NCBI GenBank assembly: GCA_047495785.1
Contig: JBLDXI010000013.1
Coordinates: 310,001-374,000, forward strand
DNA length: 64,000 nt
Reading direction: 5' to 3'
DNA from: Lepidodermella squamata
Lineage: Eukaryota > Animalia > Gastrotricha
Part shown: piece after piece, positions 33,207 through 35,081 of the stretch
Numbering within the stretch: position 1 is the first letter of the stretch
Layout of the letters: every line of letters starts with the position of its first letter
Notes under the pieces: generated by a model
Seen by the model: the letters and a program-made list of their open reading frames with translations, nothing else
Database searches by the model: none
Told to the model about the DNA's origin: nothing
Translations under genes and position numbers: made by a program

Positions 33207-35081
33207 TCAGCCTTCCTGACCGAAGTCATCCATAAATTTCCGGCATTTTTCCAAATCATCCTCGCTAACCGAAGGCTTGGCTCGGACGAGTGATTGCAAG
33301 AAATCTTTCATTGTCACTTTTGGCTCCTTGAGCTTGTCCGAAGGCACGTCCATCCACGACATCTCTCTGGCGCCGGGTGCTCCGGGGCTGCACGGCTCGT
33401 AGCGGCCATTCTCGTCAACCCGGAAGTGAGTGGCGCGCTGAAACAGTCGGACAGGCTCCATGATAGCATCGCGCACAATGATGCTAATATCAGCACCAGA
33501 AAATCCTTCCGTCCGTTTTCCCAGTTCGCGGAAATCATTTTCGTCCAATGTGTGAGGAGTAGATCCCAAATGAGTTTTGAACATCGAAGAACGGGCTCGG
33601 GCATCTGTAATCAGGCAATAGTTAGCAATTTATCACTCAACAAGCACATTAAATAACCAGGAAGGGCGATGTAGATTCGTTTTTCGAAGCGACGGCGAAT
33701 GGCGGAATCCAACGTCCACGGCAAGTTCGTGGCTCCTAAGACCAGCACATTGTCGTTATCATTGCCAACGCCCTTAATTAAAATATTGCAACAAAATATC
33801 GTATAATTGTTACCAGGATAACTGCATACCTGCATTTGAACGAGAAATTCAGTTTTAATGCGTCGGGCTGATTCTGACTCATTTTCGGATCGAGAACCGC
33901 AAAGCGAATCTACTTCATCGATAAATACTGGAACGACATGAAATTGCAAAACACAATTGCCCATATGATGGATCTTTTACCGATTGACGGGCGAGATTCA
34001 CGCGCCAATTCGAATAGAGAGCGCACGAGCTTTTCACTCTCTCCCAGCCATTTGCTGACAAGATCGGCACTGGAAACCGACAAAAAGGTCGAATTGTTGG
34101 CTTCGGTCGCCACGGCTTTTGCCAGGTAAGATTTACCTGTTCCAGGTGGCTATCAAATAATTGAATACAAACAGATCAAACAGGATATGAAACTAATTTT
34201 ACCCCGAACAGCAGAATGCCACGCCAAGGCTTCCGCTTGCCAGTGAAAAGCTGGGGAAATTTGATAGGTAGTATCACAGCCTCTTTTAGGGCCTCTTTAG
34301 CTCCCTCCAAGCCGCAAACATCGTCCCACTTAATATTCGGTTTTTCGACGACGATTGCACTGTGAAGCTGTTCACGAAACTTTCCCATTTCTTCTCTACC
34401 GTCACTTCCATTCGATTTGCCACCTTTCTCGCCAGCGGCCACTGGCTTGTTTGTGTCCGGACTCGGACCGGCTTTCATCGAGGCCTTCAAAGATTCAGCT
34501 CGACTGAGATATTCATCGCATCTCGCTCGAATCTTCTCCTTTGCCGCACTCGCTGAGGCTTCGTATTTCATAGCGTGAAGGAAGTATTCGACTGCCTGTT
34601 CATAACACCGGATCGCCTCTGGGTACTGCCCATTATTGTCATATTGCGCCGCATGGCCGGCATAGGCTATTCCTTTCTATAACATGATGAAATGCAAATT
34701 ACTGAAACTGAACAATAGTTAGTGAGTGTCTGACTTCAAGAGCTGTCCCAGTTGGTTTCGGCAAGTCAATGACAGTCGAACCAGGTGGCTTGGCGTTGTT
34801 AGCAGGCTTTTGTTTCTTCAGCTGCTCAATGCGATCAAGATATGCCTCTACTTGAGTGCGATACTTTCCTTTTTCCTCAGCACCGCAATCTTTGCTGGCA
34901 GTGACTTGCATAAGCTGAGTAGCAGCTTCATCGTATAGGCGAATAGCTTCTGCGTAATTTCCCGCCTTCTCTTGTTCACTCGCCTTTGCGCCAGTGGCCA
35001 AGGCTTGCTGTAAAAACGTTGTTTGTATATTGCTAACTTTCTTTTCTTAGGGCTAGGTACCTGAGCTGCTCCGGAACTCAT
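33207..35081 (-). CDS. VPS4: VPS4-family AAA ATPase paralogue with two N-terminal MIT domains
   Basis: MIT1 ([17 protein letters not shown]...YLDRIEQLK), MIT2 ([31 protein letters not shown]...YLSRAESLK), Walker A G|[18 protein letters not shown], Walker [17 protein letters not shown]-terminus DFGQEG*. Confidence 0.92.

Follow-up and report, generated by a model that had tools for sequence, protein, structure and literature searches.

Two MIT domains in tandem on a VPS4 paralogue of the gastrotrich Lepidodermella squamata

Introduction

How many docking modules can a single VPS4 subunit carry, and what would an additional one do? This question is raised by a gene of the gastrotrich Lepidodermella squamata, located at positions 33207-35081, on the minus strand, of a 64,000-nucleotide (nt) stretch of contig JBLDXI010000013.1 (contig positions 310,001 to 374,000, assembly GCA_047495785.1; hereafter the window). 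VPS4 hexamers dock via their MIT domains on the C-terminal MIT-interacting motif (MIM) elements of polymerised ESCRT-III. The VPS4 sequences that we examined, those of animals, fungi and plants among them, have one MIT per subunit, as does VPS4 in the literature that we consulted, save a metagenomic protein and a fused cucumber gene model that are both described below. Single MIT-MIM contacts are weak and avidity matters, and additional MIT valency normally comes in trans, from Vta1/LIP5 (PMC9477494). Here we follow up an original prediction, made from the DNA sequence alone, that the gene encodes a VPS4 with tandem MIT domains on the same polypeptide.

Results

A VPS4 gene with two MIT domains

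The gene, designated here copy B, has seven exons and a 515-residue product, as read from the DNA with frames and splice sites checked by script. Its introns are all 53-58 nt long with GT..AG ends, and short GT..AG introns of 50-59 nt are also found in the surrounding genome. Searches, folds and comparisons of copy B, as well as of the neighbouring canonical VPS4 gene (copy A), were made on separate exons.

Exon 1 (35081-35061) carries the start codon and six further codons, seven in total; the intron after it (35060-35008) is in phase 0. Exon 2 (35007-34735), which is symmetric (phase 0-0) and 273 nt or 91 codons long, encodes a first MIT domain, MIT1 (about 35007-34810), and a 25-residue P/K-rich linker. 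Exon 3 (34676-34203; 158 codons) encodes a second one, MIT2 (about 34676-34479), and, after a further linker, the N-terminal portion of AAA as far as the first glycine of Walker A. Both units matched the Pfam MIT profile (PF04212) when searched exon by exon, MIT1 with an E-value of 3.6e-13 and 49.8 bits over profile positions 3-66 of 66, and MIT2 with 4.9e-20 and 71.8 bits, the gathering score of the family being 30 bits. The description in the original prediction, of a divergent MIT-like unit and a P/K-rich linker ahead of a normal VPS4 MIT, is therefore borne out by Pfam and by the exon translations, and the profile search that it had proposed places both units above the cut-off.

The remainder of the gene is that of a conventional VPS4. 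Exon 4 (34149-33981) encodes Walker A and pore loop 1, exon 5 (33927-33830) Walker B and pore loop 2, and exon 6 (33772-33658) sensor 1 and the arginine fingers; the Pfam AAA domain (PF00004) matches across exons 4-6. Exon 7 (33604-33207) encodes the AAA lid (AAA_lid_3, PF17862, 40.6 bits), the beta domain, the Vps4_C helix (PF09336, 99.8 bits, the strongest Vps4_C match in the genome) and the stop codon. Walker A (across intron 3), Walker B (across intron 4), both pore loops, sensor 1, the arginine fingers and the lid motif can all be read in the exon translations, where we assigned the motif names according to the general features of VPS4 and AAA+ proteins. The exons bearing the ATPase motifs are 87-95% identical to those of copy A. 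Judged from its sequence, the ATPase cassette of copy B is intact with all catalytic motifs present, as had been predicted, and every sequence feature of VPS4 membership (MIT, a single AAA cassette, lid, Vps4_C and place in the VPS4 tree) is found in copy B.

The MIT1 exon is spliced into trans-spliced transcripts

Three public runs (X1, X2 and X3) contain the locus, and were compared with the window over 33100-37400. Since X2 has no joints across introns and behaves like genomic DNA, the joined forms seen in X1 and X3 represent RNA. Contigs of X1 show exact removal of the copy B introns at 35008-35060, 34677-34734, 34150-34202, 33928-33980 and 33605-33657 (joints 35007/35061, 34676/34735, 34149/34203, 33927/33981 and 33604/33658), with all removed stretches ending in CT..AC on the plus strand, which corresponds to GT..AG on the strand of the gene. 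The remaining intron (33773-33829; joint 33772/33830) is seen in X1 as two matching loose ends. In X3 the last copy B intron is gone as well.

In X1 contigs the MIT1 exon is joined on one side to exon 1 and on the other to exon 3, with its MIT2 and the first part of the ATPase, so that the two junctions for which an RNA check had been suggested are both present in RNA-derived contigs. MIT1 is thus spliced to the ATPase exons, and it both scores and folds as an MIT domain (see below), the two points on which the original prediction had staked itself. No joint that skips exon 2 is listed among the X1 and X3 contigs, though contigs are blind to minor isoforms. A pseudogene, or a wrongly joined gene model, was considered for copy B and is ruled out by the spliced contigs together with the intact frames.

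At the 5' end, an X1 contig runs past position 35121 into a 24-nt leader that is absent from the window. The corresponding acceptor AG (35121-35120) lies 38 nt before the start codon and leaves a 5' untranslated region (UTR) of 35119-35082. The leader has 44 copies in the genome, some of them in tandem arrays with a period of ~680 bp, and a GT donor directly follows it in the copy at about 1495-1530 (minus strand) of genomic stretch L009 and in each copy examined. The leader on the contig, its genomic copies and the GT donor together indicate that copy B is trans-spliced to a spliced leader; the spliced-leader RNA locus had no match to an Rfam family. At the 3' end, a contig covering 33112-33604 and joined to 33658 extends the 3' UTR to at least 33112. 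Copy B is therefore transcribed, spliced and trans-spliced.

MIT1 is predicted to fold as a VPS4-type MIT

MIT1 aligns to VPS4 MITs without insertions or deletions, including the animal-type length of the loop between helices 2 and 3. An AlphaFold2 model of exon 2, built on a 33-row alignment, has helices at residues 2-14, 18-37 and 43-66 with a predicted local distance difference test (pLDDT) of 92-97, followed by the linker as a low-confidence tail. When this model was compared with the PDB by Foldseek, the MITs of human VPS4B and VPS4A were the top matches (root-mean-square deviation 1.2-1.4 Å over 64 residues, 36-38% identity). The nearest solved sequences were those same domains (VPS4B MIT at E 5.8e-8 and VPS4A MIT at E 5.5e-6, within an overall VPS4B/A range of 6e-8 to 7e-6), while MITD1, calpain-7 and ULK3 gave E-values of 3e-3 or worse. 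By its predicted structure, MIT1 is a bona fide MIT domain, an asymmetric three-helix bundle; MIT2, going by its profile match, is a bona fide MIT of the VPS4 type.

In human VPS4A the substitution L64D blocks binding of MIM1 and V13D blocks binding of MIM2 (PMC11218997). We mapped both positions by the ungapped offset of the match to 1yxr, assuming that chain to be natively numbered. The helix-3 motif of MIT1, with the leucine equivalent to L64 and its acidic neighbours in the MIM1 groove, is conserved.

The genome contains CHMP1-, CHMP2A-, CHMP2B-, CHMP3- and CHMP6-like genes whose C-terminal MIM motifs can be recognised, the family names being assigned by eye. Structure prediction with a CHMP MIM peptide, which had been put forward as a check, gave weak support for one pairing: MIT1 paired with the C-terminal 45 residues of the animal's own CHMP1-like protein scored 0.34, against 0.01 for the best control, with at least 81% of contacts shared between runs and a partner pLDDT of at least 55. 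Of 78 solved complexes, 51 attain the mark used, as do 2 of 108 mismatched pairs, and passes at 0.60 or under are wrong more often than right unless the pairing is likely beforehand. We regard this prediction as a small increment, and not as proof, for docking by MIT1.

Two further observations concern the partners of VPS4. The CHMP6-like frame (L013, 1411-1917, minus strand) has two copies of LPEVP, a core of the MIM2 type, in a stretch of ~20 residues close to its C-terminus, and its product could be a bivalent partner for a VPS4 with two MITs. The genome also has a Vta1 gene, which rules out the idea that the extra MIT compensates for a lost Vta1.

Copy B lies beside a canonical VPS4, its sister gene

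Directly upstream of copy B, on the same strand, lies copy A (35759-37241), a canonical single-MIT VPS4 of 422 residues. Its exons, read from the sequence with joints in X1 and X3, are 37241-37221, 37166-36699, 36648-36267, 36207-36055 and 36003-35759. Three of its four introns are gone in X1 and the same three in X3; for the first intron no joint is listed in the runs.

The proteins of the two copies are 78% identical over 412 aligned codons, exon 3 of copy B being 70% identical to exon 2 of copy A. Their nonsynonymous distance (dN) is 0.18 and their proportion of synonymous differences (pS) is 0.89. Since pS is saturated and dN is 0.18, the duplication is old, and both copies have been under purifying selection; the same saturation means that neither a dN/dS ratio nor a date for the split can be obtained. 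Three intron positions are common to the two genes, with copy B having three more, including the one between its MIT exons, and copy A having one of its own. In a tree of the MIT-linker-N-AAA piece (the exon 3 piece of copy B) with 33 other VPS4 sequences, copies A and B are sisters at 100/99 within animal VPS4, with a branch length of 0.70 for B and 0.11 for A.

The faster evolution of copy B is confined to one region. Set piece by piece against six outgroup VPS4 proteins, B falls behind A in conservation in its MIT only (where, for example, B has 36/64 and A 47/64 identities to a limpet VPS4); in the AAA core, lid and C-terminal parts, A and B stand at the same distance from the outgroups. 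All 8 coding differences that separate the window from the runs are synonymous third-position changes (3 in B and 5 in A), and none of them falls in exon 2.

Several features of the pair were noted in passing. The observed pS of 0.89 exceeds the 0.75 expected at saturation, and the GC content at third codon positions, by exon, spans 0.31-0.63 in B and 0.34-0.47 in A, which hints at different codon preferences. The two genes are arranged head to tail, with the 3' UTR of A extending to about 35448 in X1 and the acceptor of B at 35120, and the ~330 nt between them have almost no RNA coverage; copy B may have a promoter of its own or be the second gene in an operon-like unit. Upstream of the copy A start codon, X1 loose ends at 37270 and 37314 continue as the minus strand of 37449-37499; they may represent an exon of the 5' UTR joined in an unusual way, or else an assembly artefact caused by a strand switch.

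A proposed origin of MIT1 by exon duplication

The original prediction held that both MIT exons begin at the same phase-0 position as the first intron of the canonical copy, which is what the alignment shows. The exons of MIT1, MIT2 and the copy A MIT (exon 2 of copy A, starting at 37166) all start at the same alignment column, position 3 of the Pfam MIT profile, a phase-0 intron directly precedes each of the three starts, and both genes have an exon 1 of 7 codons. Within its own genome, MIT1 is single-copy in the assembly, and its only matches at E<0.01 are the copy A MIT (35%, E 1.2e-6) and MIT2 (29%, E 1.8e-3).

An alternative is exon shuffling, by which the MIT1 exon would have come from a different gene with an MIT domain. 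The MIT trees place MIT1, on a long branch, within the metazoan VPS4-MIT group (96/91); the free trees join it to other long branches instead of MIT2 and the copy A MIT, as capture would have it; moreover, MIT1 has its best single identity (40%) to an MIT in a multi-MIT protein that is unrelated. A single clade of MIT1, MIT2 and the copy A MIT, however, was not rejected by the approximately unbiased (AU) test (p-AU 0.515) and, when imposed, gave a likelihood 0.23 above that of the free tree. Non-VPS4 MITs of the same genome score 83 or less against MIT1, as compared to 115 for the copy A MIT; the best solved relatives of MIT1 are VPS4A and VPS4B; the loop length and a Cys-Gly pair in the helix 2-3 loop are common to MIT1 and the copy A MIT; and the phase and position at which the exon begins are identical. 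In view of these results we consider shuffling very improbable.

The origin of MIT1 is thus most simply explained by the gene having duplicated an MIT exon of its own, though this is not proven: the phase-0 start, the kinship with VPS4 MITs and the AU test are all compatible with the exon duplication originally suggested, without amounting to proof of it. At only 29-36% identity of MIT1 to MIT2 and the copy A MIT, the donor may have been A-like or B-like.

Occurrence of the two-MIT layout

The canonical VPS4 or SKD1 proteins (human VPS4A and VPS4B, yeast Vps4 and copy A) share with copy B the succession of MIT, linker, AAA cassette, lid, beta domain and Vps4_C, and differ from it in that copy B has two tandem MITs on one polypeptide. 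Two MIT units in a row are also found in Vta1/LIP5, calpain-7 and ULK3, but these proteins are cofactors or other enzymes, whereas copy B is the ATPase itself. The MIT pairs of these proteins bind ESCRT-III tails, sometimes bivalently (PMC9477494). In copy B the two MITs are connected by a linker of ~25 residues with low predicted order in the exon 2 model, and may in this differ from the packed pair of the Vta1/LIP5 type; the Vta1 family profile (PF04652) did not match the MIT exons of copy B at E-values up to 1. For VPS4 with two or tandem MITs, a full-text literature search yielded only the Vta1/LIP5, calpain-7 (CAPN7) and ULK cases.

Database searches gave a similar picture. A phmmer search with exon 2 against 1.84 billion representatives retrieved 18 matches, none of them close and most of them multi-MIT repeat proteins. 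A word search with exon 2, whose length window excludes full-length relatives of an exon query, had no match, and a metagenome scan with exon 2 returned only a prokaryotic TPR protein, a false match. With exon 3, the best matches of the word search (59-62% identity) were all ordinary VPS4 fragments. Combining P0015, a metagenomic protein, with the exons in a profile retrieved only canonical VPS4 of ~435 residues, in what was a weak search since MAFFT placed the exon rows badly. When longer VPS4 matches were checked for a second MIT, one was present solely in a cucumber model, which also has two AAA stretches and evidently results from the fusion of gene models. The lack of MIT1 orthologues in these searches carries little weight, as longer relatives are hidden by clustering at 50% identity and few members of the phylum seem to have been sampled.

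P0015 itself, a 534-residue intronless protein from ENA assembly ERZ15610583 (a 2192-base contig; L039, 107-1711), is the only other protein that we found with two MITs followed by AAA and Vps4_C. It differs from copy B in being only ~30% identical, with the acidic pair of Walker B and the aromatic residue of pore loop 1 not conserved. Its sequence suggests that it is probably an independent, possibly inactive case, and it may be an inactive VPS4-like adaptor in a eukaryote. As a side observation, the best sequence matches to MIT1 were small proteins consisting of three or four consecutive MITs alone (P0001, P0003, P0004 and P0010).

Discussion

Our results point to copy B being, with fair but not high confidence, a functional and lineage-specific VPS4 paralogue composed of MIT1, a flexible linker, MIT2, a linker, AAA and Vps4_C. 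It may have come about through a tandem gene duplication that produced copies A and B, after which B would have duplicated the MIT-coding part of its exon 2, along with the sequence leading to it from the acceptor of intron 1, to give a new phase 0-0 exon. Divergence would then have been strong in MIT1, moderate in MIT2 and hardly noticeable in the ATPase. We envisage that copy B builds VPS4-type hexamers, alone or mixed with A, that would pull ESCRT-III subunits through the pore. With two independently tethered MIT modules per subunit, such a hexamer would display 12 MITs as compared to 6, and the extra MITs may confer higher avidity or a shifted substrate range. Because the leucine and acidic residues of the MIM1 groove are kept while helix 2 is remodelled, MIT1 probably still docks helical MIM1-type ESCRT-III tails, with an altered preference. 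Neofunctionalisation of copy B towards altered avidity or substrate range, as the original prediction had put forward, is plausible, in view of the faster evolution of its MIT part only and of the weak complex prediction.

A number of observations weigh against a functional two-MIT enzyme. No orthologue carrying MIT1 was found among the protein representatives, by word search or in the metagenome scan, so that long-term constraint on MIT1 is unsupported, and the low identity of MIT1 to its two closest relatives in the genome (19/66 to MIT2 and 24/66 to the copy A MIT) makes it the most diverged part of the gene. In the MIM2 groove, the position equivalent to V13 is a glycine in MIT1 (alanine in MIT2 and copy A), and helix 2 has changed strongly in its second half. 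The pass of the CHMP1 pairing is weak and may reflect memory of solved VPS4 MIT-CHMP1 complexes. As for the transcript, the splice evidence consists of assembled contigs of one run (X1), with one contig for each of the first two junctions; no listed contig covers the whole copy B mRNA, and contigs cannot reveal minor isoforms or isoform ratios. The phase 0-0 structure of exon 2 also means that skipping it would leave a normal, in-frame single-MIT protein.

Some of these observations could be accommodated by MIT1 being a decaying or non-binding relic, or a mere spacer, left by a neutral duplication, with copy B working via MIT2 and largely redundant with A. The divergence of MIT1, the lack of orthologues that show constraint and the weakness of the complex prediction are what such a relic would lead one to expect. 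A relic would not, on the other hand, be expected to score well over the Pfam cut-off, to be predicted with a confident fold free of insertions and deletions relative to VPS4 MITs, or to conserve the helix-3 groove residues. Nor does decay fit the intact frame, splice sites and hydrophobic pattern, which have persisted despite synonymous sites being saturated among all three MITs, or the lack of between-strain differences in exon 2. We consider the relic unlikely, if still worth keeping in mind.

The remodelled helix-2 surface and the glycine at the MIM2-groove position may also be read as signs of a new, non-canonical ligand of MIT1, either another MIM type or a partner outside ESCRT-III, in which case copy B would be retargeted with MIT2 keeping the link to ESCRT-III. 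Accelerated change limited to the MIT region of B would agree with this, and some human MITs do bind partners outside ESCRT-III (NRBF2, ULK1/2; PMC9477494). The conserved helix-3 motif together with the weak pass of the CHMP1 tail, however, favours ordinary docking of the MIM1 type, which leaves a non-canonical ligand decidedly improbable. A broader proposal is that MIT1 has a specificity of its own, be it for another ESCRT-III tail or MIM type, for a bivalent partner such as the CHMP6-like protein with its doubled LPEVP, or for a non-ESCRT protein, and that copy B is thereby retargeted for lineage-specific membrane remodelling; we hold this to be rather unlikely.

The MIT-AAA-Vps4_C kind of protein is known, and what is new in copy B is the presence of tandem MITs in cis on VPS4, a finding of moderate interest to ESCRT specialists whose weight is limited by the two-MIT copy B coming so far from one genome. 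If the exon duplication favoured here holds, copy B would be a clean example of domain duplication at the exon level following gene duplication. Copy B, which is expressed and has its two MITs in cis, forms a matched natural pair with copy A, its conservative sister with a single MIT, and the pair could be used to test if the number and sequence of MITs set the strength of recruitment, the order of substrates or the site of ESCRT-III disassembly. Should copy B indeed be retargeted, the pair would be a natural experiment on how the number and type of MITs program the enzyme.

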